NCBI GenBank assembly: GCA_010909165.1
Contig: MU008162.1
Location: 2,108,001 to 2,172,000 of the forward strand
Origin: Anthoceros angustus
Taxonomy: Eukaryota > Plantae > Anthocerotophyta
Reading direction: 5' to 3'
Length of the DNA stretch: 64,000 nt
How positions within the stretch are numbered: the first letter of the stretch is position 1; every line of letters starts with the position of its first letter. The notes beneath the pieces are model-generated. The model was not told where the DNA came from, did no database searches, and worked only from the letters and a program-made list of their open reading frames with translations. A program made the position numbers and the translations under genes. Of this stretch, positions 6,373 through 46,924 are shown piece by piece.

Positions 6373-6635
6373 CTGCTGCAAAACCCTATACTTATGAAAC
6401 CCTAAACTTGGAAGTCGGCTCACCGCTGGGCCCTACCACTGCAAGACTCCACCCCCTGCCTGAAAACCTAAAAGCTTAAACCTTAAACCTATGAAACCCT
6501 AAACCTAGAAGATCAGTTTGCGCAAAACCCTAAACCTATGGAACCCTAAAGTAGTGAAACCCTAAACCTAGAAGGTCAACTACCGTAATACCCTAAACCT
6601 GTGAACCCCTATACTTGTAAAACCCTAAACCTAGA
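6330..6635. repeat. Cluster of interspersed plant telomere motifs (CCCTAAA / telo-box AAACCCTAA)
   Basis: Eight perfect CCCTAAA (~6333, 6400, 6497, 6528, 6544, 6560, 6591, 6623) plus variants, 16-100 bp apart. The motifs are not contiguous. Confidence 0.85.
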
Positions 6636-7212
6636 ACTGCTCGGCTGTTGGGCCGCCATGACCTCCACCGGCCATTTAACAACGCCAGTATGTGACAAAT
6701 CGAAATGTGAGTGTCTCGAGGTTTGTCTCGAAATAGCAATATAATTTAAACCTGCGTTTATCTCGGATATAGCTTTGTCTAAAATAGCAATATAATTCAA
6801 ACATGCGTTCATCTCGTATATAACATCTCCAAATGAGTTGTCTCAAGGTATTTGTCTTTCCAAATGGATGTAATGTCACTCTAAGGTCCAACTCGCGCAT
6901 ATATTACATTTTACAGGGTGGAGGGTCACGATGGTGGAGAAAGGAGAGCTTGGGTTCACGTCATCTATGCATATGTACTAGTTATGGTCATCATAAAGTT
7001 ATAAAAAAGCTATATGGTTACATTGGTAAAATTGACAGGCAGTGCACACTATCTTGGTCACAACAATATACGAGCAGCAATGAGGATTAATTTTTCATAA
7101 TTGAGCTTTTGCTTTTTCAAACACCATCTCGTACACCAAACTGAAAACGTGCAATAAGGAAATTCTAATTTCAAAGAATTTGCACTTATGAACATCCACA
7201 ATGAACACCAAA

Positions 7213-7559
7213 GTTGTTGTAGTATAATAATATAATTACATAAGCTGGATAGTATGGTGGTATGATTACATAGGCTTGATTGTCCACAATCCGCAGACTG
7301 GCCTAGATCCGGGTATTATTACATAGGCTTGATTGTCCACAACCCGGAGACTGGCATAGATCCGGGTATTATTACATAGGCTTGATTGTCCACAACCCGA
7401 GACTGCCCTAGATCCGGGTATGATTACATAGGCTTGATTGTCCACCCGAAGATTGGCCTAGATCCGGGTATGATTACAGAGACTTGATTGTCCACAACCC
7501 GGAGACTGGCCTAGATCCGGGTTCGATTCCGGGCAACAAATTGATTCCCGGCAACGAGA
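7213..7559 (+). pseudogene. tRNA-like copy whose central (anticodon-arm) segment is tandemly amplified ~5x (~54-bp unit)
   Basis: Starts GTTGTTGTAGTATA, then five copies of ATTACATAGGCTTGATTGTCCACAACCCGGAGACTGGCCTAGATCCGGGT, and ends GGTTCGATTCC…CCCGGCAACGAGA. Confidence 0.8.
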
Positions 7560-7685
7560 ATAATTTTAATTTTCATGATTTAGCTTTTGCATTTTCAAAC
7601 ATCATTTCGTACACCAAACTCAAACAATAAAGAAATCCTACCTTCAATGAATTTATACTCATGAACATCCGCAACGAACACTAAA

Positions 7686-7776
7686 CTCGTTGTAGTATAG
7701 TGGTATAAGTACATAGGCCGGATCGTCCACGACCCGGAGACTGACCTAGACCCGGGTTCGATTCCCGGCAACGAGA
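7686..7776 (+). ncRNA. tRNA-like gene (tRNA-Asp-related body, expanded anticodon domain)
   Basis: CTCGTTG/CAACGAG acceptor stem + A73; A-box TAGTATAGTGG; D stem GTAT/GTAC; B-box GGTTCGATTCC within the CCGGG/CCCGG T stem; TTTTT at 7781-7785. The central domain is 35 nt instead of 17. Confidence 0.7.
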
Positions 7777-8040
7777 ATAATTTTTCATGGTTTAGCTTTT
7801 GCTTTTTCAAACATCGCCTCATGGACCACACTCAAACGTATAATAGTCTTCTACAACGAGTTTGGTGTTGGTAATGCATATTGTTGAGTACGATATACTT
7901 CTTCTTCTACAACGAGTTTGCTGTTGGCAATGCATATTGATGAGTACGATTCATTAAAGTAAGGGCTTTCCTATTATACGTTTGGGTTTGGTTTAAGAGG
8001 TGATGTTTGAAAAAGCAAAAGCTAAACCATGAAAAATTAT

Positions 8041-8130
8041 TCTCGTTGCCGGGAATCGAACCCGGTCTAGGCCGGTCTCCGTGTAGTGGACAATCCGGGC
8101 TATGTACTTATACCACTATACTCCAACGAG
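8041..8130 (-). ncRNA. tRNA-like gene, minus-strand copy
   Basis: Reverse complement CTCGTTGGAGTATAGTGGTATAAGTACATAGCCCGGATTGTCCACTACACGGAGACCGGCCTAGACCGGGTTCGATTCCCGGCAACGAGA, followed by ATAATTTTT. Confidence 0.65.
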
Positions 8131-8243
8131 TTTGATATTGGTTGTGGATGTTCATGAGTACAAATTCATTGAAGTTGGGATGTCCTTATTGCACGTTTGA
8201 GTTTGGTGTCTGAGATGATGTTTGAAAAAGCAAAAGCTAAACC

Positions 8244-8314
8244 ACCCGGTCTAGGCCGGTCTCCGTGTAGTGGACAATCTGGGCTATGTACTTATACCAC
8301 TATACTCCAACGAG
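8244..8314 (-). pseudogene. 3'-truncated tRNA-like copy
   Basis: Same 5' and central sequence as 8041-8130; the T loop, 3' acceptor strand and terminator are deleted. Confidence 0.75.
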
Positions 8315-8439
8315 TTTGATATTGGTTGTGGATGTTTATGAGTGCAAATTCATTGAAGTTGGGATGTCCTTATTGCACGTTTGAGTTTGATGTTTGAGAT
8401 GATGTTTGAAAAAGCAAAAGCTAAACCATGAAAAATTAT

Positions 8440-8529
8440 TCTCGTTGCCGGGAATCGAACCCAGGTCTAGGCCTGTCTCCGGGTCGTGGAGGATCGGCCC
8501 ATGTACTTATACCACTATACTACAACGAG
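8440..8529 (-). ncRNA. tRNA-like gene, minus-strand copy
   Basis: Reverse complement CTCGTTGTAGTATAGTGGTATAAGTACATGGGCCGATCCTCCACGACCCGGAGACAGGCCTAGACCTGGGTTCGATTCCCGGCAACGAGA + ATAATTTTT. Confidence 0.7.
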
Positions 8530-8653
8530 TTTGGTGTTCGTTGTGGATGTTCATGAGTACAAATTCATTGAAGGTTGGATTTTCTTATTGCACGTTTCAG
8601 TTTGGTGTATGAGATGATGTTTGTCAAAGCAAAAGCTAAACCATGAAAATTAT

Positions 8654-8740
8654 TCTCATACCCGGGAATGGAGCCCAGGTCTAGGCCGGTCTCCGTGTCG
8701 TGGACGATCGGCGTATGTATTTATACTACTATACTATAAC
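8654..8740 (-). pseudogene. Degenerate tRNA-like copy split by a LINE after its third nucleotide
   Basis: The body 8654-8740 has a mutated B-box (GGCTCCATTCC). The missing first 3 nt (CTC) and the leader resume at 9774. Confidence 0.75.
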
Positions 8741-9773
8741 AACAACAACAACAACAACTTTATTTATGTCCACTAGGGTGGAAAAACCACCATGGGATAT
8801 AACTTGTACAACCATAACTTGGATGAAGGAGGGTGTACACATACGTACATCTGAACTAGAGAAACAAAAACAGGGAAAATAAAAGGCGGAGTATTGACAA
8901 GAAAGTTACAGTGTGCCAAGCAAGGACAGCCTGTGATCAAGCATCTCAGAAAGACATAGAGCAGAGAGCTTGGGAATATGAAAGGAAAAAAATCACCGCA
9001 GGAAAAAACCTTCACACTAAAACAGGAGAGAGTATTTGGCCCGGATGTTGTTAAATGCAGGGCAATAAAAGAGAAAGTGCATTTCGCATTCCGTAGTGGA
9101 AGAACAGAGCCTGCAAATGTGATCTTCGAGAGGAAGGGCTAGCGCTAGCCGGCGGTCAGTCTCAACCCGGAGCTGATGGGTGATACAAAATTGACCAGTT
9201 AAAGAGCGAAGCTTGAAAGACGTGGGGGAACTAAGGTAACGTGGCAGTTTTGGGAAGCTAGAGAGAGAAATCACACGAAAGTGCTCCTTATAGTAAAGAA
9301 GCTTGGTGGAAAGAGGAGCTGCAGAGGGAATAGGGTACCAAGTAAGGCGGAGGTATCGAAATTTGATTGCCTTACGGATAAGGTGGTTAGAGCGAGGGTG
9401 TGGAGGGGGGGATCGGGTAATTGAAGAGTGGCCAAACAGGGAGAGTAGAAGGACTAAAGTGGTATCGCTTCAACCACATGGAGGCTTTGGCATTCCAACA
9501 AGAAATAGAGCCATCAACCCAGAGAAATCTAGACGATCGAAAAGCAAGGAGAAGGTAAGGAGGGAGGTGAGGGTTTTGTTGGTCAAGAAGGTGGAGGCGG
9601 TAAAAGAAAGAGGAGAGACGGAAGAGGCCATCAAGTTCTAAGGGAAAGATGGCAAATTCAGAGAGAAGGGCATGAAGAGGGGTAGAGCGCTTCCAGGCGA
9701 TGTGAGCACGAAGGAAAGAAGCTTGTACTTTGTCCACCTTAGGCCAGGAAGAAGGCAAAAGATCAAGGCCCCA
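8738..9773 (-). mobile_element. 5'-truncated LINE (RTEX/CR1-L2-Daphne-like ORF2 C-terminus) with AATAAA and a (GTT)7 tail
   Basis: Minus-strand WGLDLLPSSWPKVDKVQASFLRAHIAWKRSTPLHALLSEF and HQLRVETDR…ICRLCSSTTECEMHFLFYCP (C-terminal CCHC finger of the H.L.IETGR…C..C…E.HF…C type). Plus strand shows TTTATT at 8759-8764 and (AAC)7 at 8738-8758. Confidence 0.85.
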
Positions 9774-10364
9774 GAGTTTGGTATCTGTTGTGGATGTTCA
9801 TGAGTACAAATTCATTGAAGGTAGGATTTTCTTATTGTAAGTTTGAGTTTGGTGTATAAGGCGATTCCCAACAACGAGAATAATTTTATATGGTTTTAGT
9901 TTTTATTTTTTCAAATATTTTTGCATGGAAAATAATAGTTAGCTTCTGTTTTTTCAAACATCATCTCGTAGATAGTTTAGCTTTTGCTTTTTCAAACATC
10001 ATACACCCCTTAAAGAATAATATCTATGGTTTAGTTTTTGTTTTTTCAAATATAAACCTGGGTTCAATTTTGGGAAGGAAAATAATCTCTAGGTTCGATT
10101 TCGGTAAGGAGAATAATTTCTATGATTTAGTTTTTATATTATTAAGTACGATAAATCAAATCTAGTACATTAAGTTTGACTTATTATGAACAGAACAAAC
10201 GTACATCATACAAATATACATTACTTAGCATCATACTTATATAAATTTTTATATATAATAGTAAATATATAAATATATAAATATAGGTCTACTTTATGGA
10301 AAGCATAGCTCTCCACATCATTTGTATGTTGCCCAGGGTAGAAGAAAAAGAAGAATTTTATTTA

Positions 10365-13135: not shown

Positions 13136-14249
13136 TTAAGCGCCGGGGGTGAAGTTGGTGGCGTAGGCCCAGGCGTTGTTGACGGTGGGGTCGGCCAAGT
13201 GATCAGACAGGTTCTCGATGGGGCCCTTGCCGGTGACAATGGCCTGGAAGTAGAAGCCGAACATTGAGAACATGGCGAGTCTGCCATTCTTGAGCTCCTT
13301 CACCTTCAACTCAGCGAAGGTGTCGGGGTCGTCAGCCAGACCCAAGGGGTCGAACGACCCGCCGGGGTACAGGGGGTCGGACACCTCGCCCAACGGTCCT
13401 CCGGCCACACGGTAGGCCTCCACGGCTCCCATGAGAATCACCTGGGAGGCCCAGATGGCCAGGATGCTCTGCGCGTGGATGAGGCTGGGGTTGCCGAGGT
13501 AGTCCAGGCCTCCCTCAGAGAAGATCTGCGAGCCGGCCTTGAACCACACCGACTCCCCGAAGCTCACGCCGTTCTTGGCCAGCAGCTCGGGTGTAACGCA
13601 CCCGAGAGTTCCAAGCATGGCCCAGCGGGCATGGATCACCTCCAGCTCCCGGTTCTTGGCGAAAGTCTCGGGGTCCGCGGACAGGCCCGCGCTGTCCCAG
13701 CCGTAGTCGCCGGGGAATTCTCCCTTCAGGTATGAGGGAGTGTCGGCGGAGAAGGGGCCGAGCCACTTGGGACGGTCAGGGCCGTACCTGAACGCAGCAA
13801 CATCATCAACAACCTGATATCAGCAAGGTGCGGTAAGCTTCTACACTTCCCTCCACATTTCAATCCAGCTTAGACACGGGGAAATTCGGAATGCATCCTC
13901 GTAATTCCGATCCCGAATACAACGAGGGATCTGCTGTGCATCCTCCAGACTACAATCCAGGTTAGAAAGAGGAGGATTTTGCTGTGCATTCTGAACTCGT
14001 CGAGATTTCAACCCGGCAGCTTAGGAACACGAGGGATTTGCTTTCCATTCCATTGCAGGCAATTTGCATCAAGAATTGCAGGGAGTGATGGAAAGAAGGA
14101 TACCAGATGCTGGATGGCGCGGATGCGGTCTTCCTCATCTGAAGCTTGGAGTCGCTGCTGCCCGCAGCGCTGAGGATCTCGCTGCGCTGGCGGAAGACGC
14201 TCTGCCCGGCCAGGGCAGCGCTGGAGGCGCATGCTGTGGCGGCCGCCAT
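13136..14249 (-). CDS. LHCB: Major LHCII chlorophyll a/b-binding protein (Lhcb1/2/LhcbM type); exons 14249-14104 and 13787-13136, 265 aa
   Basis: Transit peptide [17 protein letters not shown]…, then [11 protein letters not shown]|[13 protein letters not shown]…[13 protein letters not shown]…[19 protein letters not shown]…[12 protein letters not shown]. The 316-nt GT-AG intron splits the Trp codon and the frame closes correctly. Confidence 0.97.
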
Positions 14250-16011: not shown

Positions 16012-16802
16012 AGGCCAAAATGGACCACACGTGCCCTCACGGACAGGACTTGGGGAACGGGACGGCACGGTGAGGAAGACGCGCGTTGTTGGGCATGGGG
16101 CATGTTGCATGCATGTGGATGTCCAATTGAATGCCAAACCCACGGATGTTCCGTCTCCGTGACGACGTGGCCATACCGGCCGTACTCTTACTCTTCTAGT
16201 ATCGATGCGTGCAGGCGCTCGAGGAAGCCGCATTACGTATATCGAAGATTGTCGAACGCAGAAGCACGTTAACTACTGTATGCCGGGTCTTCACTCTTGA
16301 TACAACGGGTAATAACAGAACAGCAAACTTTTTTTTGTCGCGACGAAATCGAGGACTTCGTAAATATGTAGGTATCACGTTTACAAGCGAAGCCTCCCGC
16401 GAGCAGAAACCAGAGAAACCTAACACATGGAGATGAGGAGAGCAACTCCAGAAACAAACAGAGCACATGCCTCTGTGCCAGCCACAACAACAGACAGCAA
16501 TCTTGATGCACTATGAGGAATACCAAACCAGCCGCTTGGAAGCAAAATCCATGGAGCAATACGATGCTTCAGAAAAACCAGAGACAGTTGAGAACACTTA
16601 GAACATAAAAACCCTGACGTGAACCAGTCTGATAAACTTCCAAAGGACCGGCCACCATTGCCGGACTACGTGCAATGGACAATTAACTATACCGTTGACG
16701 GGTTGGGATCATTGCTGGGGCCCCGCCCCGGTGCTGAGATCATTGCCAGACTACTGCCGCTGACATCCTTTTTCGAATTACTTTGGGTCCCCTGGCGGGG
16801 GG

Positions 16803-17000
16803 TGGGGTGCGCCAGGCAATGGAAGTAGTGCAATACCAGAGCGACGCGCGTGGAGCCGAGGTAGCAAGCTACCTCATATGGCTCCACCCCCTGAAAGAAA
16901 TAAGATTAATATCATGTGGGCCGATGACCCACGTATCAGATATTAAACTGATAAGAACAGATACTACACTTGATCTTAGCCAAAAGGCCGAGAAAGGTAT
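16803..17000 (-). ncRNA. U2: U2 spliceosomal snRNA
   Basis: Minus strand reads ATACCTTTCTCGGCCTTTTGGCTAAGATCAAGTGTAGTATCTGTTCTTATCAGTTTAATATCTGATA… with the branch-point pairing GTAGTA, an Sm-site-like ATTTCTTTC and the loop IV ATTGCACTAC. Confidence 0.97.
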
Positions 17001-17072: not shown

Positions 17073-17616
17073 ATATATCTATGAACTTGAAGCGAACCAA
17101 GGAGACCAACAAATTCTGCCATCTGTGAACTTTTCTCTCTTCTTCTTCTTCTTCTCCCACTTGAACCAGTCATGATTTGATCCCGTTCAAGAAGCTGTTT
17201 ACGAACACGGTTGTCAGCTCCTCGTCCTGGTGGTATCCCTTTGAACGCCGCTACAGAGTTTGTTCCAAAGTTTGGGACACTCTCTTGGTGGACAAAGCCT
17301 GGCCAGCATAAACTCAGATATGTTTCCCGGATGCGTATTCAGATCAAGAGAAACCACTCGTGATGACAGGCACGATGCTCTGAGCGTCCGATGACACATG
17401 TATTGCCTGACCAACAAGAAGGCCTCGGAGAAAGGCTTGAGTGGAAGCACAGTTGTGGTGTGACCTGCGTCGACCTTGCATCCGCCGACTGACCCAGCCT
17501 GCCATGGCTGTCTGGAGTGTATTAATCTGCCTCCTCGGAAGAGCTCCTGCTCACCTGACTTTAAGGAGCCCACCGAGTTGGAGGACCTTGGCAAGAAAGC
17601 CAGCTCCTCCAAGAGA

Positions 17617-20600
17617 ATGTCCGGCTGGAGACGAATCTTCCAGCGACGGTGGTGGGCACGGCCCCACGAGGGTGTCAGGCTGAACGACTTGTACGAGCCA
17701 ACAGGAGCGGATGTGCCGGTTGCTGCTGTTGGTAGGGAGATGGGTGAAACCGTGAGGAAGCTATGTCATGAGGGCCATGTCCACGAGGCTGTTGAGGCTT
17801 TGGGAGTTCTGGTGGAGGCAGAATTTTGTATATCCAAATCTCTCCTGTATGCTGTTCTGAAGAAATGTGTAGCCGAGAAGGATCTTGTTTTGGGTCGCCG
17901 CGTCCATGCCTTGATGGTCAAACAGGGGTATCAGTCGGACACGTTCCTGGGCACCCATATCCTGCGGATGTATTGTTCGCATGGCAGGTTGCAAGACGCG
18001 ATGGATGTGCTGGCACTGGTAGCAAAACCAGATGCCTTCATGTGGTGTGCCATAATTTCTGCGCATGTCAGACATGGGCAAGGCAAGGTCGCTATAGAGC
18101 TGTATCATCGGATGCGCAGTTCAAATGTGAAGGCAGATGGCCATGTGTTTGCGGCAGCCCTTCAGGCTTGTGCAAGGGGATCAGACTTCAAAACTGGGCA
18201 GCAGGTCCATGCTGATGTGTTGGCCAACGGTGTTGAGTCTGATTCGTTCGTTTGTAGTTGCTTGGTGGACATGTATGCAAAGTGTGGTAGCTTACAGCAT
18301 GCCCAGGTTCTGTTTGATGGACTTGAGCAAAAGAATGTGGTGACGTGGAATACCATGATAGCAGGATATTCTCAGCAGGGCAAGGGACAGGAAGCCCTTC
18401 GTCTCCATAAGGCTATGCAAGATGACGGCATGGTCACACCTGACTCTGTGACATTTGTGTGCCTTCTGCAGGCATGTGCAAGTGTGGGCTCCCCAGCTTT
18501 GGAGAAGGGGAAGGAGCTTCATGCACAAGTAAAAGAACAAGGACGTGAAACTGATTTATTTGTAGCAAACAGTTTGGTGAACATGTACGCAAAGTGTGGC
18601 AGCTTGCACGAGGCTCGTGGTGTTTTTGACGTACTTGGTCAAAAGGATGTGGTGACATGGAATGCCATGATAGCAGCATATTCTCGTCAGGGCATGGCCC
18701 TCGAAGCCCTTCATCTGTACACAGTGATGCAAGAGACTGGCATCAGCGTACCTAATTCTGTTACATTTGTGTGTCTGCTGCAAGCATGTGCAAGTCTCGG
18801 CTTGACAGGTTTGGGGAAGGGACAGCAGCTTCATGCACAAATCAGAGAACGAAGACTTGATTCTGATGGGTTGGTTGCCAACGGTTTGGTAGACATGTAT
18901 GCAAAGTGTGGCAGCTTGGAAGCCGCCCAGAGAGTGTTTGACGCACTTGGTCACAAAGATGTGGTGAAGTGGAATACCATGATAGCAGGATATTCCCACC
19001 AGGGAATGGGCCAGGAAGCCCTTCATCTCTACAGTGCTATGCAAGAAGAAGGCATGGTTGTACCCGATTCAGTGACATTTGTGTGTCTCCTTCAGGCATG
19101 TGCAAGCATGGGCCGCCCAGCTTTGGAGAAGGGGAAGCATCTTCATGCACAAATTGAAGAGCAAGGACATGAAACAGTTGTAGCTGTGGCCAATAGTTTG
19201 GTGAATATGTATGCAAAGTGTGGCAGCTTGGAAGATGCACACAGAGTGTTTGATGAACTAGTTCACAAGAATGTGGTGACGTGGAATGCCATGATAGCAG
19301 GCTATTCCCAGCAGGGCATGGGCCACGAAGCCCTTGTACTCTATAGGGCTATGCAGGATGAAGTCATCACGGCACCCGATTCTGTGACATTTGTATGTCT
19401 TCTGCAGGCGTGTGCAAGCGTGGGCCACTCAGCTTTGGAGAACGGGAAGGAGCTTCATGCGCAAATTAGAGAAGGTGGACATCAAACTGACGTGTCTGTA
19501 GCCAACAGTTTAGTGAACATGTATGCAAAGTGCGGCAGCGTGCAGGATGCTGAGAGAGTGTTTAATGGACTTAGTCAAAAGAATGTGGTGACCTGGAATG
19601 CCATGATAGCGGGGTGTTCCCAGCAGGGCAAGGGTCAGGAAGCCCTTCATCTCTACAGTATGATGCAAGAAGAGGGTCTGGCGCAACCCAATTCTGTGAC
19701 ATTTGTGTGCCTCCTGCAGTCTTGTGCAAGTGTGGGGACCCTAGCTTTGGAGAAGGGAAAGCAGCTTCATAAGGAAATCAGAGAACAAGGACATGAGGCT
19801 GATGTGTTTGTAGCCAACAGTTTGGTGAACATGTATGCGAAGTGTGGCAGCCTAGAAGATGCGCAGAGGGTGTTTGATGACCTTAGTCAAAAGGATGTGG
19901 TGACTTGGACTGCTCTAATTGCAGGGTATTCCCAACAGGAAAGGGGCCAGGAAGCCCTTGATCTGTACAGTGCTATGCAAGAACGCGGCACTGCTGCACC
20001 CAATTCTCTCACATTTGCGCACCTCCTGCAGGCATGTGCAACTGTGGGCACCCCAGCATTAGAGATGGGGAAGCAGCTTCATGTGCAGATTAGGGAACAG
20101 GGATACCAAGCTGAGATGTTTGTAGCCAACAGTTTGGTGAATATGTATGCAAAATGTGGGAGCTTAGACGATGCACAGAGTGTATTTGACGGACTTGGTG
20201 AAAAAGATGTTGTGACTTGGACTTCTCTAATCTCAGGGTATTCCCAGCAGGGCATGGGGCAGGAAGCCCTTCGCCTTTACAGTGCCATGCAAGAAATTGG
20301 CATCGCTGTACCAAACAGTGTGACATTTGTGTGCCTTCTCCATGCATGTGCGAATGTTGCAGCGTTGCATCTTGGAAGGCAACTACATGCACAGATTGAA
20401 GAACAAGGACTTCAAGCTGATTCATTTGTAGCCAGCAGCCTGATAAACATGTATGGAAAGTCTGGGAGCCTGGTCGATGCACAGGAGTTGTTTGATGTGT
20501 TTGCCGAAAGAGATGTTGTCGCTTGGAGTGCACTGATTGCGGGCTACGCCTGTCAAGGAGACAGTGAAGTGGTCTTCGACTTGGTCCAGAGAATGGAAGA

Positions 20601-21105
20601 GGATGGCATACAGCCTACTGACCTGACGTTTCTCAGTGTGCTAGCAGTATGTAGTCATGCAGGTCTGGTGAACAAGGGGAAAGAGCACTTTCAATCTATG
20701 AGCCACCACTATGGCATTGCTCCCAAAGTGGAGCACTACACATGCATGGTGGATCTCCTGGGCCGGGCTGGTCAACTGGAAGAGGCAATAGCTTTGGTGA
20801 GGACAATGCCGGTCCTGCCTACTGCTGCAGTATGGCACACTGTATTGGGTGCTTGTCGTAAGTGGAGCAACGTGGAGTTGGGACTCCATGCTTTCTACCA
20901 AGCAGTGAAGCTAGACAACAGAGATGCCGCAGCTTATGTGTTGATGTCAAACATATACACGAGTGCCCAGATGTGGGAGCAAGCACAGCAGATGCAGGCG
21001 AGGAGATTAACAATGCGGGCCTGGAAGCAAGCAGGTCAGAGCTGGTGGACAGACAGGGACGGACAGGTGCATAGTTTTCTGGTTGGGGATGAGAAGCATT
21101 TCTAG
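17617..21105 (+). CDS. PLS-class pentatricopeptide repeat protein (organellar RNA-editing factor) with E1-E2 and a WW-type PG box, no DYW catalytic domain; intronless
   Basis: L-S + 8 P-L-S triplets (…VVTWNAMIAGYSQQG…/SVTFVCLLQACAS…/…ANSLVNMYAKCGSL…) + P2-L2-S2 + E1/E2 + KQAGQSWWTDRDGQVHSFLVGDEKHF*. First ATG at 17617; the open frame begins at 17476. Confidence 0.95.
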   Translation: MSGWRRIFQRRWWARPHEGVRLNDLYEPTGADVPVAAVGREMGETVRKLCHEGHVHEAVEALGVLVEAEFCISKSLLYAVLKKCVAEKDLVLGRRVHALMVKQGYQSDTFLGTHILRMYCSHGRLQDAMDVLALVAKPDAFMWCAIISAHVRHGQGKVAIELYHRMRSSNVKADGHVFAAALQACARGSDFKTGQQVHADVLANGVESDSFVCSCLVDMYAKCGSLQHAQVLFDGLEQKNVVTWNTMIAGYSQQGKGQEALRLHKAMQDDGMVTPDSVTFVCLLQACASVGSPALEKGKELHAQVKEQGRETDLFVANSLVNMYAKCGSLHEARGVFDVLGQKDVVTWNAMIAAYSRQGMALEALHLYTVMQETGISVPNSVTFVCLLQACASLGLTGLGKGQQLHAQIRERRLDSDGLVANGLVDMYAKCGSLEAAQRVFDALGHKDVVKWNTMIAGYSHQGMGQEALHLYSAMQEEGMVVPDSVTFVCLLQACASMGRPALEKGKHLHAQIEEQGHETVVAVANSLVNMYAKCGSLEDAHRVFDELVHKNVVTWNAMIAGYSQQGMGHEALVLYRAMQDEVITAPDSVTFVCLLQACASVGHSALENGKELHAQIREGGHQTDVSVANSLVNMYAKCGSVQDAERVFNGLSQKNVVTWNAMIAGCSQQGKGQEALHLYSMMQEEGLAQPNSVTFVCLLQSCASVGTLALEKGKQLHKEIREQGHEADVFVANSLVNMYAKCGSLEDAQRVFDDLSQKDVVTWTALIAGYSQQERGQEALDLYSAMQERGTAAPNSLTFAHLLQACATVGTPALEMGKQLHVQIREQGYQAEMFVANSLVNMYAKCGSLDDAQSVFDGLGEKDVVTWTSLISGYSQQGMGQEALRLYSAMQEIGIAVPNSVTFVCLLHACANVAALHLGRQLHAQIEEQGLQADSFVASSLINMYGKSGSLVDAQELFDVFAERDVVAWSALIAGYACQGDSEVVFDLVQRMEEDGIQPTDLTFLSVLAVCSHAGLVNKGKEHFQSMSHHYGIAPKVEHYTCMVDLLGRAGQLEEAIALVRTMPVLPTAAVWHTVLGACRKWSNVELGLHAFYQAVKLDNRDAAAYVLMSNIYTSAQMWEQAQQMQARRLTMRAWKQAGQSWWTDRDGQVHSFLVGDEKHF

Positions 21106-29130: not shown

Positions 29131-32083
29131 ATGATCAAGCATACTATGGGCAATGGAGGCGATTTCGAGCTGCCTCAGCAGCTCCTGGAGGTATTGCCCT
29201 CGGATCCATACGAGCAGCTGGATGTCGCGAGGAAGATTACGTCCATGGCCATTGCAGCTCGAGTGTCCAAACTCGAGTCTGAGGCCACCAAGCTGCGGCA
29301 AAAACTGGCGGAGAAAGAACAGCTGATATACGGCCTGCAGGAGCGCTTAGTGGAGGCTGAGCAGACGCTTCAAGAGACCACCAACCGCTTATCTCATGCC
29401 CTGGATGACCAGGTGCGTCTTCTTCAGTGTGACTTTTGCATGTTGCTTCACATGAAGGACGGGTGTTCGTTCCGCACGTACACGCTTGTCCAGTTCTGAG
29501 CAAGGCGGGGGGCGTCTTGCTGAAAGATTGCTCATTCTGCCGTGGTTTCATTTTTTCTCCATCCTCTGATCACTTTCTTGATGTTTTGCGTCAAAATACC
29601 TCCTGACAAGCCATGGTTGTGACTCTGTTCGCCAGGCTAAACTCACAAGCGAGAAGAACGTGCTTGTGGCTACTGTGAAGAAGCTTAATCGTGATGTGGC
29701 GAAGGTACGTACAGAGGCGGCTATTCAGATCCTGCGTGCCTAGGAGCAATGCCAGAATGTTGTTACGCTTTGCACAGCTTCAGGAGGAAGCTGGGTCCTT
29801 TCGTGAGATAGTCACCCATGCCGTGACAGTTCTGACTATGAGTTTAAAAGAAATTCTCCACCTTTTTTGCAGTTGGAGACGTTCAAGAGGACTTTAATGC
29901 AATCCCTGCAGGAGGATGAGGACGCTCCTACTGTGAGTTGCATCTTTCTAGTTCACATTCACGTTCAGTCACAGAAGCTTTAGCTTCGCGGTGCATCCAA
30001 TTTGGAAAATGTATCATTTGACACAATTTGGCTCGCTCTTCCTTATGGACAGCCTGTCGATGCTGCTGAGAAGGTTCAGAGGGCAACTGTGCTTAGTGGG
30101 AAAGCTGCAAAGGCTGCAGGTAATGGGGCCCTGCCGCAACTCCTAGGATGTAAGTCTCGTGTGGAACTTGCGGACATATCTTTCTGACTGCAGATTACGA
30201 ATTTTTTCAGAAGCAACAAGGGTGGATGACGAGCCATCCAACGGTGTGCTGGCAATGAGACCAATCATTGTCGGTGGTAGGGGGGTTGCACAAGGTGCTC
30301 CAGATCTTGCCGGCCAGGTGGATGAAACGCATGGTGATGCAGACGGTTTGTCTACTCCCCTACTTCACTACTGCAGTCAATCTTGCTTGAATCTGCATCA
30401 GGCTGTCTGCGGCTGTGAAGTTGAGCTGTTAACAAGCTTCAGGACCTGCTGCACTGGAGTTGGAGAGCATAAAAAGATTCCTCTGTTTTTTTTTTTTTGC
30501 TGGTGTCCACTCATTGAATCGTGGGTTGGTTGTTTACAGTGTCAAGGTCAATCAGTAATCCTCAACGAGCCATCCTGTCATTGACTCCGTCTTTGACACC
30601 ACAGTTAACCCCAACTGGGTCACCTAGGAGAAAGTCTGCAGCTGGCTCACCTAGGCGGGCATCTGCTGCAGGTTCTCCCAGATGGAGTTCAAGTGATGCC
30701 AGACTACCTTTGCCATCCTCACAGCCAGCAAGCAACACGACCACTGCTCCAAACTCTCCGCCTCCTACAGGCTCAATGCCCGGTTTGCACTTTGACATTT
30801 TGTTGACAATGCTTGGAGAGGCTTCATCTCTTATGTTGAGACGATGAGGCTGATTTTGTCTCTGTTGTTTTGACAGCACGTACTCCACGGGTGGATGGCA
30901 AGGAATTTTTCCGCCAAGCTAGGTTTGTTCCTCTGCCTTTTGTCATTGGTTCGCATATTTATTTAGGGTAGTCTGTGATGTTTCTCCGGTCGATGCAACT
31001 GTCTCAGAGCATTGCGTGTGAAACGTGTGTGCTGGCAATGAGACCAATCATTGTCGGTAGGGGTTGTACAAGGTGCTCCAGATCTTGCCGGCCAGGTGGA
31101 TGAAACGCATGGTGATGCAGACGGTTTGTCTACTCCCTACTTCACTACTGCAGTCAATCTTGCTTGAATCTGCATCAGGCTGTCTGGCCTGTGAAGTTGA
31201 GCTGTTAACAAGCTTCAGGACCTGCTGCACTGGAGTTGGAGAGCATAAAAAGATTCCTCTGTTTTTTTTTTTTTTTGCTGGTGTCCACTCATTGAATCGT
31301 GGGTTGGTTGTTTACAGTGTCAAGGTCAATCAGTAATCCTCAACGAGCCATCCTGTCATTGACTCCGTCTTTGACACCACAGTTAACCCCAACTGGGTCA
31401 CCTAGGAGAAAGTCTGCAGCTGGCTCACCTAGGCGGGCATCTGCTGCAGGTTCTCCCAGATGGAGTTCAAGTGATGCCAGACTACCTTTGCCATCCTCAC
31501 AGCCAGCAAGCAACACGACCACTGCTCCAAACTCTCCGCCTCCTACAGGCTCAATGCCCGGTTTGCACTTTGACATTTTGTTGACAATGCTTGGAGAGGC
31601 TTCATCTCTTATGTTGAGACGATGAGGCTGATTTTGTCTCTGTTGTTTTGACAGCACGTACTCCACGGGTGGATGGCAAGGAATTTTTCCGCCAAGCTAG
31701 GTTTGTTCCTCTGCCTTTTTGTCATTGGTTCGCATATATTTATTTAGGGTAGTCTGTGATGTTTCTCCGGTCGATGCAACTGTCTCAGAGCATTGCGTGT
31801 GAAACGTGTGTAGGAATCGGCTAAGTTATGAGCAGTTCAGCGCATTCCTTGCAAATATTAAGGAGCTCAATGCACACCGTCAAACCCGGGAGGTAAATCC
31901 TAAGAACCCCGTTTTTTGTGACTACCGCACATTCAAGAGAAGCTGGGTGATGGGAGTCAGTATTCTCAAACGCAACTTTCTGTGCAGGAAACGTTACGGA
32001 AGGCCGATGAAACCTTTGGCCCAGAGAACAAGGACCTTTACATTGCGTTCGATGGACTCTTGAGTCGGCACCTCCCCACATGA
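29131..32083 (+). CDS. At4g15545-family coiled-coil protein (NAIP-like); multi-exon, with two exons duplicated in this assembly
   Basis: LPSDPYEQLDVARKITSMAIAARVSKLESE…, VKKLNRDVAK|LETFKRTLMQSLQED, RVDGKEFFRQAR|NRLSYEQFSAFLANIKELNAHRQTRE|ETLRKADETFGPENKDLY..FDGLL. TGA at 32081-32083; start ATG at 29131 or 29146. Confidence 0.9.
30244..31810. repeat. Direct tandem duplication (~778 bp x2) inside the At4g15545-like gene
   Basis: GTGCTGGCAATGAGACCAATCATTGTCGG at ~30246 and ~31029; ORFs 30521-30847 and 31299-31625 are identical. Confidence 0.97.
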
Positions 32084-43390: not shown

Positions 43391-45543
43391 TCCCACAGCT
43401 CCAGCCGCGAGGCCCCAGGGCGCGGGAGGCTCCAGCCGGGCTCCAGTTAAATCTGTCTGCCAAGGAGACAACCTAGCACGGTGGAAGGAGAACAGGGGGA
43501 CCGACTGTCCAACAAAATTGTCAGCAATTAAAGGAGATCGTCAAATTTATCCTCTCCATATGGACAATGTGTCTGGCAACTTGGCAACGGATGAAGGGCA
43601 CTGCAACCTGACCATCAGCTGTCTGCTGCAGCCGCGTCACCAACAGCACCAGCATCGTGGGGCCTATCCCGAGCTTGCTGCCAAAGCTTTGTCGATTTTT
43701 CCGCAAGTTTAGGCCTGAAAAAGAATCCTGGCCACCTTTCTTCGGAAATCAGACATACTGGTGGTGGTCACCCGCATGTGCTAGATACATCTCTCACCTC
43801 TTGCTAAGTCATAGCATCTCATGTCATAATATGTATGATCTCCTGACATCTGATGTGGAAGGGCTCGTTGTTGTCACCGTCTGGGGTACATGCATTCAAG
43901 ATTGCCCTTATCAACACCCGCTCCCTCCTACCCTCCGTAGGAGTGAGTGGCAATAAGGTGAAGCAGGCGGGACCACAAGGGCACTTTGTGAATGACGTGC
44001 TTTCCAAGTTGGATACCACTTCCTACTGCTCACACCCGGCATCTGACAAGTGACACCTAATGATTTTATCAGACAGCGCCGGGATCAGAATGCTCCAAGC
44101 AGAAGGCGGTCCCATGGTTGAACAGGGGAGAACAGTACGCATATGACAAGACGAAGTTACAAGATTAACAATCTTGTGCTTAAAAGAAGGTTAGACAGTG
44201 CTGCAATGAGATATATGTGAGCACGGTACCGGAGGAGGGTTCTGCCTGGTCCACCTACTGCAGCACACCAGGTGATTGCTGGTGGAGCATCCGAGGGTGC
44301 CTGAAACCTGTTCATCCTAGCATTGGCTTGGCGGTAGCCTGTTGGACAACCAGCCTTAACACGCTGGAGAGATCAAACATCCCAAACATCTTGCGTGCTT
44401 GCAGGTGGCCTGGGCATCATAGTAAGACAAGAGGGGTGTAAGACTGGTGGCGCAATAGGAATATGAGTTTGACACTCCAACAACACCAACCAAACAAAAG
44501 TTTGAGAGCACTGTAAGGCATGCAAGCAACAGCTACAGTTGCACAAGCCCACTGTGTAGATAGCCCCACGTGAACATGCCCATTTCTAGAAACCTGGATG
44601 TGAGGTGGGGGTCCATTGAATCTGCACACAAGAGTCGCCAGCGCTATCCTCTTTTTGCATTATCAAGTCTCAGCAAAACAGTTCTTCTCATACACAAGAC
44701 AACAATGTGTGCGCCGAGCCGAGACTGTGACGGGCCCGTCCACTGTGAAGAACAATGGTATCAGCACAGAAAAGTCACCATCCAGTATTAGGCTGACATG
44801 AGTCAAGCTGCAGCACAGTGATGAACAACACACAGAAAGCTCAGCACATCACCCGGGCTGCCAAGTCCAACTTTGCAACAGCAACTCCACGGCACAGGCG
44901 TCACGGATCATTCATGAACGCTGTTGCGTAGAAGCTGCAAGTTGGATGACACCCGACGCCTCCGTTGAAATCGATGTTCCCCCAACGCAACGTCCGAACA
45001 AACGCTTCCACATCACAACTTCCAAAACCCTAGCAACGTTACCATCACAACGTCTGCTCACCATCTGCCCAAACCACTGGTGTCCATATCCTTCTCGAAT
45101 TCCTCCTCCTCTTCCCACGCGTCTCAACGAGGCTCCGCAAACACACACAGTCATCCCATCCACAGTTGCCTCCTCCATGCTCCCTCCCCCATCATCCCAT
45201 CACTACACTAAAACTAACCCCTCCCCAAATCGAAAATCAAACTTAACACGCGCCGCCGTCAATTTTGAAAAAACAAGAGATAAAGGGATAGAACGTAAAA
45301 GTACAAACAACCTGTCACGAGATCACGACAGGGAAAAGTGAAGCAGCAGCGCTATCCAAGCCTTATCTTTTGCTCGACGCCTATAGGCCGGGTCCAATAT
45401 TGCCCTGCTGCTCCGTGTAGCCATGGCGCCTCGCGCGACCTCTATAGCCGGCCTCGCAACAATGTCGAGTAACAAGCGCCTCGCACCTGCCGCCTCCGAC
45501 TGCCCCCGCTCTTCCCTGCCCGACCAGCCGAGCAGCGTTAGCC

Positions 45544-46924
45544 ATGGCGTCCGCCACAGCATGCGCCTCCAGCGCCGCCCTGGCCGGGCAGAGCGTCTTC
45601 AAGCAGCGCAGCGAGATCCTCAGCGCTGCAGGCAGCAGCGACTCTAAGCTGCAGATGAGGAAGACCGCTTCTGCGCCATCCAGCATCTGGTAATCTTGCT
45701 TCAGATTGCGTGCAAAGCTAACCTCTCCGTGTTTCTAAGGCGGATTGAAATGTGGAGGAGTGAAGAATGCAGAGCAAATCCCGAGTGTTTCTAAGCCGGA
45801 TTGAAATTTGGAGGGGTTTAGAATGCATAGCAAATCCCGATCGTTTCTGAACCGGATTGAAATTTGGAGGAGTTTAGAATGCACAACAGATCCCTAGTGT
45901 CTCCAAGCTGGATTGAAATGCGGAGGAGTGTAGAGTGCTTAGCGAGTCCCTCGTGTTTCCAAGCTACTGGATCGAATTCTGGAGAAGTTTAGAATGCCTA
46001 GCAAATCCTTCGTGTTTCTAAGCTGGATTGAGATGTGGAGTGGTTCAATATGCATAGAAAATCCCTCTGTTTGTTCGCCAGATTGGAATCTCGAGGAGTT
46101 TAGGATGCGTAGCAAATCTTGTATTCTACGCCGGAATGAAACCTGGAGGTCTAGGTAGAATGCATAGCAAACCTGTCGTGTCCGTGAGCTGGAGTGAAAA
46201 CAGGGGAAGTGTTCAGAATTCTTCCGGATCTTGCTGATCTCGCACTGTGGAACTCCTTGTTGCTGCATCCAGGTACGGCCCTGACCGTCCCAAGTGGCTT
46301 GGCCCCTTCTCCGCCGACACTCCATCATACCTGAAGGGAGAATTTCCCGGGGACTACGGCTGGGACAGCGCGGGCCTGTCCGCCGACCCCGAGACGTTCG
46401 CCAAGAACCGGGAGCTGGAGGTGATCCATGCCCGCTGGGCTATGCTTGGAACTCTCGGGTGCGTCACACCCGAGCTGCTGGCCAAGAACGGCGTGAGCTT
46501 CGGGGAGTCGGTGTGGTTCAAGGCCGGCTCGCAGATCTTTGCCGAGGGAGGCCTGGACTACCTCGGCAACCCCAGCCTCATCCACGCGCAGAGCATCCTG
46601 GCCATCTGGGCCTCCCAGGTGATCCTCATGGGAGCCGTGGAGGCCTACCGTGTGGCCGGAGGACCGTTGGGCGAGGTGTCCGACCCCCTGTACCCCGGCG
46701 GGTCGTTCGACCCCTTGGGCCTGGCTGACGACCCCGACACCTTCGCTGAGTTGAAGGTGAAGGAGCTCAAGAATGGCAGACTCGCCATGTTCTCAATGTT
46801 CGGCTTCTACTTCCAGGCCATTGTCACCGGCAAGGGCCCCATCGAGAACCTGTCTGATCACTTGGCCGACCCCACCGTCAACAACGCCTGGGCCTACGCC
46901 ACCAACTTCACCCCCGGAGCCTAG
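45544..46924 (+). CDS. LHCB: Major LHCII chlorophyll a/b-binding protein, second paralogue; exons 45544-45689 and 46273-46924, 265 aa
   Basis: Same exon sizes (146 + 652 nt) and near-identical protein to 13136-14249; 583-nt GT-AG intron. Confidence 0.97.
45728..46180. repeat. ~59-bp minisatellite inside the LHCB intron (~7-8 copies)
   Basis: GTGTTTCTAAGC(C/T)GGATTGAAAT(T/G)TGGAGGAGTTTAGAATGCATAGCAAATCCC repeated. Confidence 0.9.

Follow-up and report, generated by a model that had tools for sequence, protein, structure and literature searches.

Many 'tRNA-like' sequences in plant genomes resist the attempts of curators to separate function from junk, and a repeat array in the hornwort Anthoceros angustus raises this question in a concrete form. 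The array lies in a 64,000-nt stretch of contig MU008162.1 (positions 2,108,001 to 2,172,000; hereafter the window, in whose coordinates all positions are given) and is made of sequences that resemble transfer RNA (tRNA) genes in which the anticodon arm has been enlarged. Are these units genes for a small RNA, or are they the remains of a tRNA-derived repeat? The preferred reading, to which a probability of roughly 0.55 is assigned, is that they form a lineage-specific tRNA-like family of the RNA polymerase III (Pol III) type, derived from a nuclear tRNA-Asp gene and amplified as a 215-bp tandem unit, and that the locus is a birth-and-death cluster of such units. The halves of the molecule differ in their behaviour: the promoter and the acceptor/T/D core are kept in the intact copies, while the enlarged arm drifts like the spacer.

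The array spans approximately 7070-10135. It is thus found where the initial annotation had placed it (7090-9910), with a slightly wider extent. Its repeat unit measures approximately 215 bp (start-to-start spacings of 215, 184 and 215) and consists of an approximately 125-bp spacer ending in a CAA-containing leader, a tRNA-like sequence of approximately 90 nt, and ATAA followed by a T run. Approximately ten tRNA-like copies are present in a rearranged tandem cluster, with three of them (units B, C and E) intact and the remainder broken. At least six copies of approximately 90 nt with a period of approximately 215 bp had been described previously; the period is correct, but the count is too high, as only B, C, E and F are full-length and F is decayed.

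The 22-nt motif from the 3' part of the tRNA-like sequence has three exact matches and one match with three mismatches, the 27-nt motif from the 5' part occurs four times with at most one mismatch, and the number expected by chance is 0 in each case. A covariance model built from the tRNA-like unit (R1) was run unfiltered over all 64 kb, and in this search of the window the tRNA-like copies were confined to the array. A weak R1 match at 44741-44821 (12 bits, E-value: 0.6) was rejected because inspection showed that it is not tRNA-like. The orientation of the units flips at approximately 7846 and 9861: A and B are on the plus strand, the 56-bp stubs, C, D, E and F are on the minus strand and the 3' stub is again on the plus strand. 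Plus- and minus-strand units stand head-to-head as inverted repeats that are 86-94% complementary. The elements of the array are as follows.

7072-7212 (+): left boundary of the array, comprising a degenerate stub of the 3' end (GCAATGAGGATTAATTTTT) and the unit A leader
7213-7559 (+): unit A, a decayed and expanded tRNA-like copy of 347 nt
7560-7685 (+): spacer and leader of unit B, approximately 125 bp, with TTTATAC near -35 and a CAA-containing stretch before +1
7686-7776 (+): unit B, an intact 91-nt tRNA-like gene (ARAGORN: tRNA-???; RF00005: 41.6 bits; R1: 112 bits)
7847-7960 (-): two tandem stubs of 56 bp, in each of which a leader is joined to the first 10 nt of the tRNA-like gene
8041-8130 (-): unit C, an intact 90-nt tRNA-like gene (R1: 101 bits)
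8244-8314 (-): unit D, a copy of C that ends after the long arm (R1: 54.8 bits)
8440-8529 (-): unit E, an intact 90-nt tRNA-like gene (ARAGORN: forced Ile-GAT; RF00005: 40.1 bits; R1: 114 bits)
8654-8743 (-): unit F, a full-length but decayed tRNA-like copy
8744-9773 (-): 3' fragment resembling a long interspersed element (LINE), approximately 1 kb, inserted after +3 of unit F
9774-9861 (-): displaced unit F leader, which ends in the gene's first 3 nt (CTC)
9862-10135 (+): 3' stub followed by short degenerate terminator and leader-start pieces and T-arm remnants

Pol III-type architecture and relationship to tRNA-Asp

In units B, C and E, the 7-bp acceptor stem (CTCGTTG/CAACGAG) is perfectly paired and followed by A73. 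All of their acceptor, D and T pairs are standard pairs, such that each can be drawn as a cloverleaf with a 7-bp acceptor stem, a D arm and a T arm. The B box (GGTTCGATTCC) is exact in all three. The A-box region reads TAGTATAGTGG in B and E and GAGTATAGTGG in C, which has a G at the first A-box position (T8 to G); C also has a variable region that is shorter by 1 nt. In F and A, the A-box region is mutated. The terminator consists of ATAA and then T5, 4 nt past A73, in each intact copy (T5 at 7781-7785 in B, 8032-8036 in C and 8431-8435 in E), compared to T4 in F and A. All of the features attributed to the complete copies in the initial annotation (acceptor stem, A73, A and B boxes, CAA leader and T5 at a distance of 4 nt) are therefore present in B, C and E. 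Read at the level of their predicted elements, the units carry a complete type-2 Pol III layout as well as the parts that are read by RNase P, RNase Z and the CCA-adding enzyme.

The 5' end of the unit points to a specific ancestor. Its first 18 nt were compared to the plant tRNA-Asp forward primer sequence as printed in PMC6521008, and the sole change is G1 to C. With 17 of 18 bases matching, the likeness of the 5' half to tRNA-Asp that was noticed from the letters alone is real. The T arm and the 3' acceptor strand presumably match plant tRNA-Asp as well. The paired acceptor changes that had been proposed (G1-C72 to C1-G72 and U2-G71 to U2-A71) are probable as regards their 3' side. On this sequence evidence, a descent of the units from a nuclear tRNA-Asp gene is supported.

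General tRNA detectors recognize the units in part. RF00005, the general tRNA model of Rfam, searched with lax filters, aligns the acceptor, D and T arms of B (41.6 bits) and E (40.1 bits), both above its gathering score of 29, and places 27 nt of the anticodon region in a local insert. The ARAGORN calls, tRNA-??? for B and tRNA-Ile(GAT) for E, are forced and mutually inconsistent.

A role of the units in priming a long terminal repeat (LTR) element was considered and rejected. When the window was searched for a primer-binding site complementary to the 3' end with CCA added, only the TGG-less copies of the array itself and chance-level matches with three mismatches were returned. The latter include identical pairs of 16-17-mers (30248-30263 and 31031-31046 (-); 13219-13235 (+) and 46825-46841 (-)), which probably belong to repeated elements.

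Conserved core, variable arm and loss of decoding

Nearly all of the differences between the tRNA-like parts of B, C and E are located in the long arm. Variable columns among these three copies number 2 of 56 in the acceptor/D/T core, 9 of 35 in the long arm and 25 of 116 in the leader. The core is therefore significantly less variable than either the leader (p=0.0016) or the arm (p=0.0025), and the arm and the leader do not differ (p=0.65). Pairwise identity is 85-89% for the leaders and 91-94% for the whole tRNA-like parts. The conservation is not limited to the promoter, as B, C and E are also identical at all 15 acceptor and discriminator positions, none of which falls in the A or B box. 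Because the conserved core is split by the variable arm, a simple gene-conversion tract does not explain this pattern. It hints instead at purifying selection on the tRNA core of live copies, with the arm free to drift.

Several observations weigh against reading the locus as a Pol III-type family with live members. The core-conservation signal comes from three copies only, and these were recognized partly by their intact cores. Decay of the core does occur here, as F has changes at 11 of its 56 core positions and A is decayed too. Most units are truncated, expanded, inverted or interrupted, which counts against the array as a working locus. The tRNA-like copies are unlisted when the whole window is run through Rfam with default filters, and exact-pattern scans of metagenome contigs with the arm motif and the 5'-half motif found no relative. 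A search of sequencing runs found no RNA run containing the stretch, a result that is silent on transcription. That search matched two runs from one sample: a DNA run of low coverage, with 13% of the sampled words, and a doubtful further run. DNA-run contigs over 7000-10100 are near-identical and short on the unique flanks and many and diverged on the LINE-like insert, and none spans the tRNA-like repeat.

The strongest competing explanation sees the array as a dead satellite derived from a tRNA: a tRNA-Asp pseudogene carrying mutations would have been amplified by unequal crossing-over and slippage, nothing would be transcribed and the intact copies would merely be the youngest. We regard this as doubtful but as deserving serious weight. 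It readily accommodates the truncations, the fivefold expansion of a 53-bp segment, the 184-bp duplication that deleted a T arm, the strand flips and the retroelement insertion, and it is consistent with a long arm that has no covariation and folds about as well as its shuffles, and with the lack of an RNA run containing the stretch. Comparable sequences are also abundant, as PlantRNA 2.0 counts thousands of tRNA-like or pseudogene sequences in some plants (10.1101/2021.12.21.473619). What this explanation does not predict is the uneven distribution of the changes. Youth alone would leave spacer and arm equally alike, whereas the leaders of B, C and E differ by 11-16% and the arm in 9 of 35 columns, the core differs in only 2 of 56, and the acceptor positions and A73 do not differ at all.

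If the lineage-specific Pol III-type family is the better description, the next question is whether the long arm is its working part. In the units, the 17-nt anticodon arm is replaced by approximately 35 nt (7714-7748 in B) that contain no U33. It was proposed initially that this segment can form a 12-13-bp stem capped by a 7-nt loop with a central NAC triplet. The stem can indeed be drawn: the consensus accommodates 13 pairs and two bulges, with pairing in 94% of the cells of helix 3. However, all four of the full-length copies carry a mismatch or deletion in this 13-pair arm. C1-G72 together with A73 is the eukaryotic Tyr acceptor signature. A functional noncoding RNA in which the structured arm and its NAC-bearing loop do the work, and which might be charged by the tyrosyl- or valyl-tRNA synthetase (TyrRS or ValRS), would fit both this signature and the minimum-energy folds of C and E, which are cloverleaves with a long arm. 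Nevertheless, such an RNA is improbable. The minimum-energy fold of B is not a cloverleaf, and the folding energies of the arms are not clearly better than those of shuffled sequences (z-scores of -0.8 to -2.0). When covariation in the arm was sought, as the initial annotation had suggested, no pair was found to have changed on both sides among the four full-length copies. The one-sided changes are wobbles and mismatches, plus a one-base deletion common to E and F, and the five arms within unit A contribute mismatches only; with 4 to 10 paralogous arms in all, the power of this comparison is low. Since the arm is as variable as the spacer and folds about as well as shuffles do, the idea that it is a conserved structured module finds no backing here.

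The letters of the loop also vary. The triplets GAC, TAC and AAC, previously singled out as Val anticodons, sit among other neutral-looking changes of the arm and are not special in this respect. The suggested simple CpG decay fits their variation in part: the change from GAC to AAC is a CpG transition, whereas that from GAC to TAC is of another kind.

It is very unlikely that the units are a short interspersed element (SINE) or another retroposed element that happens to be clustered. They share a tRNA-derived Pol III head with such elements, but they stop at the 3' acceptor strand and T5 without a body or tail, they are joined by a common spacer of constant length (125 bp), they lack target-site duplications and they have no copies elsewhere in the window. 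The layout is that of a tRNA gene rather than a SINE, as was first thought.

Least tenable is the view that the units are ordinary decoding tRNA genes whose intron is unusually long or out of place. Although Rfam and ARAGORN accept B and E as tRNAs with an insert in the anticodon region, the ARAGORN anticodons disagree ('???' for B and Ile-GAT for E) and no intron can be defined. In B, C and E, every single segment between the D and T stems was removed, at any position and of any length, and a product was accepted if its stem had 5 bp and no more than one mismatch, its 7-nt loop contained U33 and its variable region measured 3-5 nt. Neither the units as they stand nor any product of a removal has such a canonical anticodon arm, in whose loop a decoding tRNA also carries a purine at position 37. 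An ordinary intron-containing tRNA is thus excluded at the sequence level, and because no single removal restores a normal anticodon arm, the units are not decoding tRNAs. This exhaustive removal extends the earlier observation that U33 is missing and that excision of a canonical intron does not restore the loop, and it strengthens what had been put as a product that probably cannot decode.

The amino acid identity of the ancestor appears to have been lost along with its anticodon. The Asp identity set in yeast comprises G73, the GUC anticodon and G10-U25. At these positions, the units have A73 and G10-C25, and no GUC is presented in a canonical loop. As these changes remove the identity set, the product is not expected to be a substrate of the aspartyl-tRNA synthetase (AspRS), insofar as the yeast rules apply.

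Turnover of the array and its surroundings

The broken units record how copies arise and are lost. Unit A begins with GTTGTTG, has a mutated A box and a partly duplicated 3' end, and is followed by T4 runs. It is 347 nt long because it contains an internal tandem repeat of 53 bp present 5.1 times (7259-7522), which extends from the D loop through the 5' strand of the T stem. At the repeat junction, the GGG-T of the T stem is joined to the GG-TAT of the D loop, which corresponds to slippage on 3-4 bases of intragenic homology. The two 56-bp stubs at 7847-7960 adjoin the plus/minus inversion junction at approximately 7846. Unit D, which lacks the T arm, the 3' acceptor strand and the terminator, originated in a 184-bp duplication, the two copies of which (8060-8243 and 8244-8427) are 97% identical. 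Unit F is full-length, but the changes in its core have turned the A box into AGTAG and the B box into GGCTCCATTCC and have broken the acceptor stem, and only a T4 run lies downstream. At the right end of the array, the 3' stub (9862-9887) retains a T-arm remnant, CAACGAG-A and T4, and a 31-bp repeat is present twice (10061-10122) within the degenerate trail that follows (9862-10135). The locus is not a clean six-gene array; duplication creates new copies in it, and truncation, slippage and insertion eliminate others.

The insertion is represented by the LINE-like fragment at 8744-9773 (-), which separates unit F from its leader, with junctions at 9773/9774 and approximately 8743. This fragment is retroposed and 5'-truncated, and it ends in AATAAA followed by (GTT)7. 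It shows a weak match to zf-RVT, the zinc-binding end of LINE reverse transcriptases (E-value: 0.029, below the cut-off), and it is multi-copy in DNA run X1. The (GTT)7 tail runs into the GTTG of the acceptor stem, so the insertion may have been directed by microhomology. The insertion site is at the 5' end of the acceptor and not in the D loop.

Other features of the window lie outside of the array. Degenerate plant telomere-type (AAACCCT) repeats in 63-bp units are found at 6478-6636, approximately 450 bp to the left of it. A full-length gene for the U2 spliceosomal RNA (16802-17000 (-), 167 bits) is located 7 kb from the array; the plant upstream sequence element (TCCCACATCG) was sought beside this gene and was not found there. 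This is followed by an intronless gene for a 1209-aa E-class pentatricopeptide repeat (PPR) protein (17476-21105 (+)), an uninterrupted open reading frame with an E motif. RNA-editing factor genes of this kind have multiplied greatly in some lineages of early land plants.

Possible product and comparison with known systems

Under the preferred reading of the locus as a Pol III-type family derived from tRNA-Asp, the pathway from gene to product can be outlined as follows. The intact copies B, C and E would be transcribed by Pol III from the CAA-rich start region into a precursor of approximately 95-100 nt. This precursor would be trimmed by RNase P and RNase Z and receive CCA, yielding a non-decoding tRNA-like RNA of approximately 90 nt. 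It should be processable because RNase P, RNase Z and CCA addition read the acceptor/T-arm half, which is intact in these copies. What is maintained would be the 'top half' of the tRNA and the promoter, with the long arm as drifting filler. The family presumably spread by unequal crossing-over and slippage and not by retroposition. Read-through of units that face one another on the plus and minus strands would give double-stranded RNA. Such RNA from head-to-head units would probably attract silencing, as PMC12308677 reports for clustered tRNA genes in Arabidopsis.

A bolder proposal is that the product is a working, lineage-specific (and possibly hornwort-specific) Pol III RNA, with a selected tRNA 'top half' that is tagged with CCA and an arm that evolves freely. 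It could act, for example, as a decoy or competitor for tRNA-binding factors, or its gene could serve as a Pol III-bound landing site for LINEs. This proposal is considered unlikely, though not as improbable as a role that depends on the structure of the arm. If the pattern seen here holds genome-wide and the RNA exists, this would be a plant tRNA gene that has turned into a gene for a non-decoding Pol III RNA, and it would allow the role of an isolated tRNA top half to be studied in a simple system. If not, the array is one more tRNA-derived tandem repeat and mainly a warning for tRNA annotation, given that ARAGORN calls one of its copies tRNA-Ile.

No description of a family with this architecture was found in the literature when it was searched by sequence and by topic, and neither the C1 variant of the 5' end nor the variant 3' end had a match by sequence. 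A close parallel in layout is the Ser/Tyr 'SYY' tandem tRNA cluster of Arabidopsis, which, according to PMC12308677, is located in repeat-rich DNA and mostly silenced. Both loci consist of short tandem units in which each Pol III tRNA-type gene has a leader and a T run of its own. Unlike the hornwort units, however, the SYY units are described there as standard decoding tRNAs, whereas the hornwort array has an arm of approximately 35 nt, no decoding copy and far more rearrangement. The locus is therefore built like a plant tandem tRNA-gene cluster, yet its intact units do not yield the canonical anticodon arm by which a decoding tRNA is defined.

By content, the units fall into the 'tRNA-like / tRNA pseudogene' class of PlantRNA 2.0, which is made up of tRNA-derived nuclear sequences that, like them, only partly pass tRNA detectors. 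The authors of that resource note that some tRNA-like sequences may be divergent tRNAs with unknown roles (10.1101/2021.12.21.473619). Their class is a catch-all bin, whereas the units described here have a defined architecture of intact top half, promoter and enlarged arm.

In functional terms, the nearest known counterparts of the units would be tRNA-derived Pol III small RNAs, such as 4.5SI of rodents, and non-decoding tRNA-like RNAs, such as the GUT15 product of Arabidopsis. Non-decoding RNAs of tRNA descent are also found in animals, where BC1 RNA is a tRNA-derived small Pol III RNA of rodents. Rodent 4.5SI RNA (PMC10137851) is similar to the hornwort units in that its gene is lineage-restricted, is of the Pol III type, contains A and B boxes, descends from a tRNA or a tRNA-derived SINE and does not encode a decoding tRNA. 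In 4.5SI and BC1, by contrast, the full cloverleaf with its perfect acceptor stem has not been retained, and their expression has been demonstrated, whereas that of the units is predicted. The Arabidopsis GUT15 tRNA-like RNA (PMC6152437) and mascRNA (PMC9777231) resemble the units in being cloverleaf-like, in having an acceptor/T half that is read by processing enzymes and in having a non-canonical anticodon region. These two are released from Pol II precursors without a Pol III promoter of their own, in contrast to the full Pol III layout of the units. It is this predicted combination of a full cloverleaf core with its own Pol III promoter that sets the hornwort units apart from both 4.5SI and the GUT15-type RNAs.

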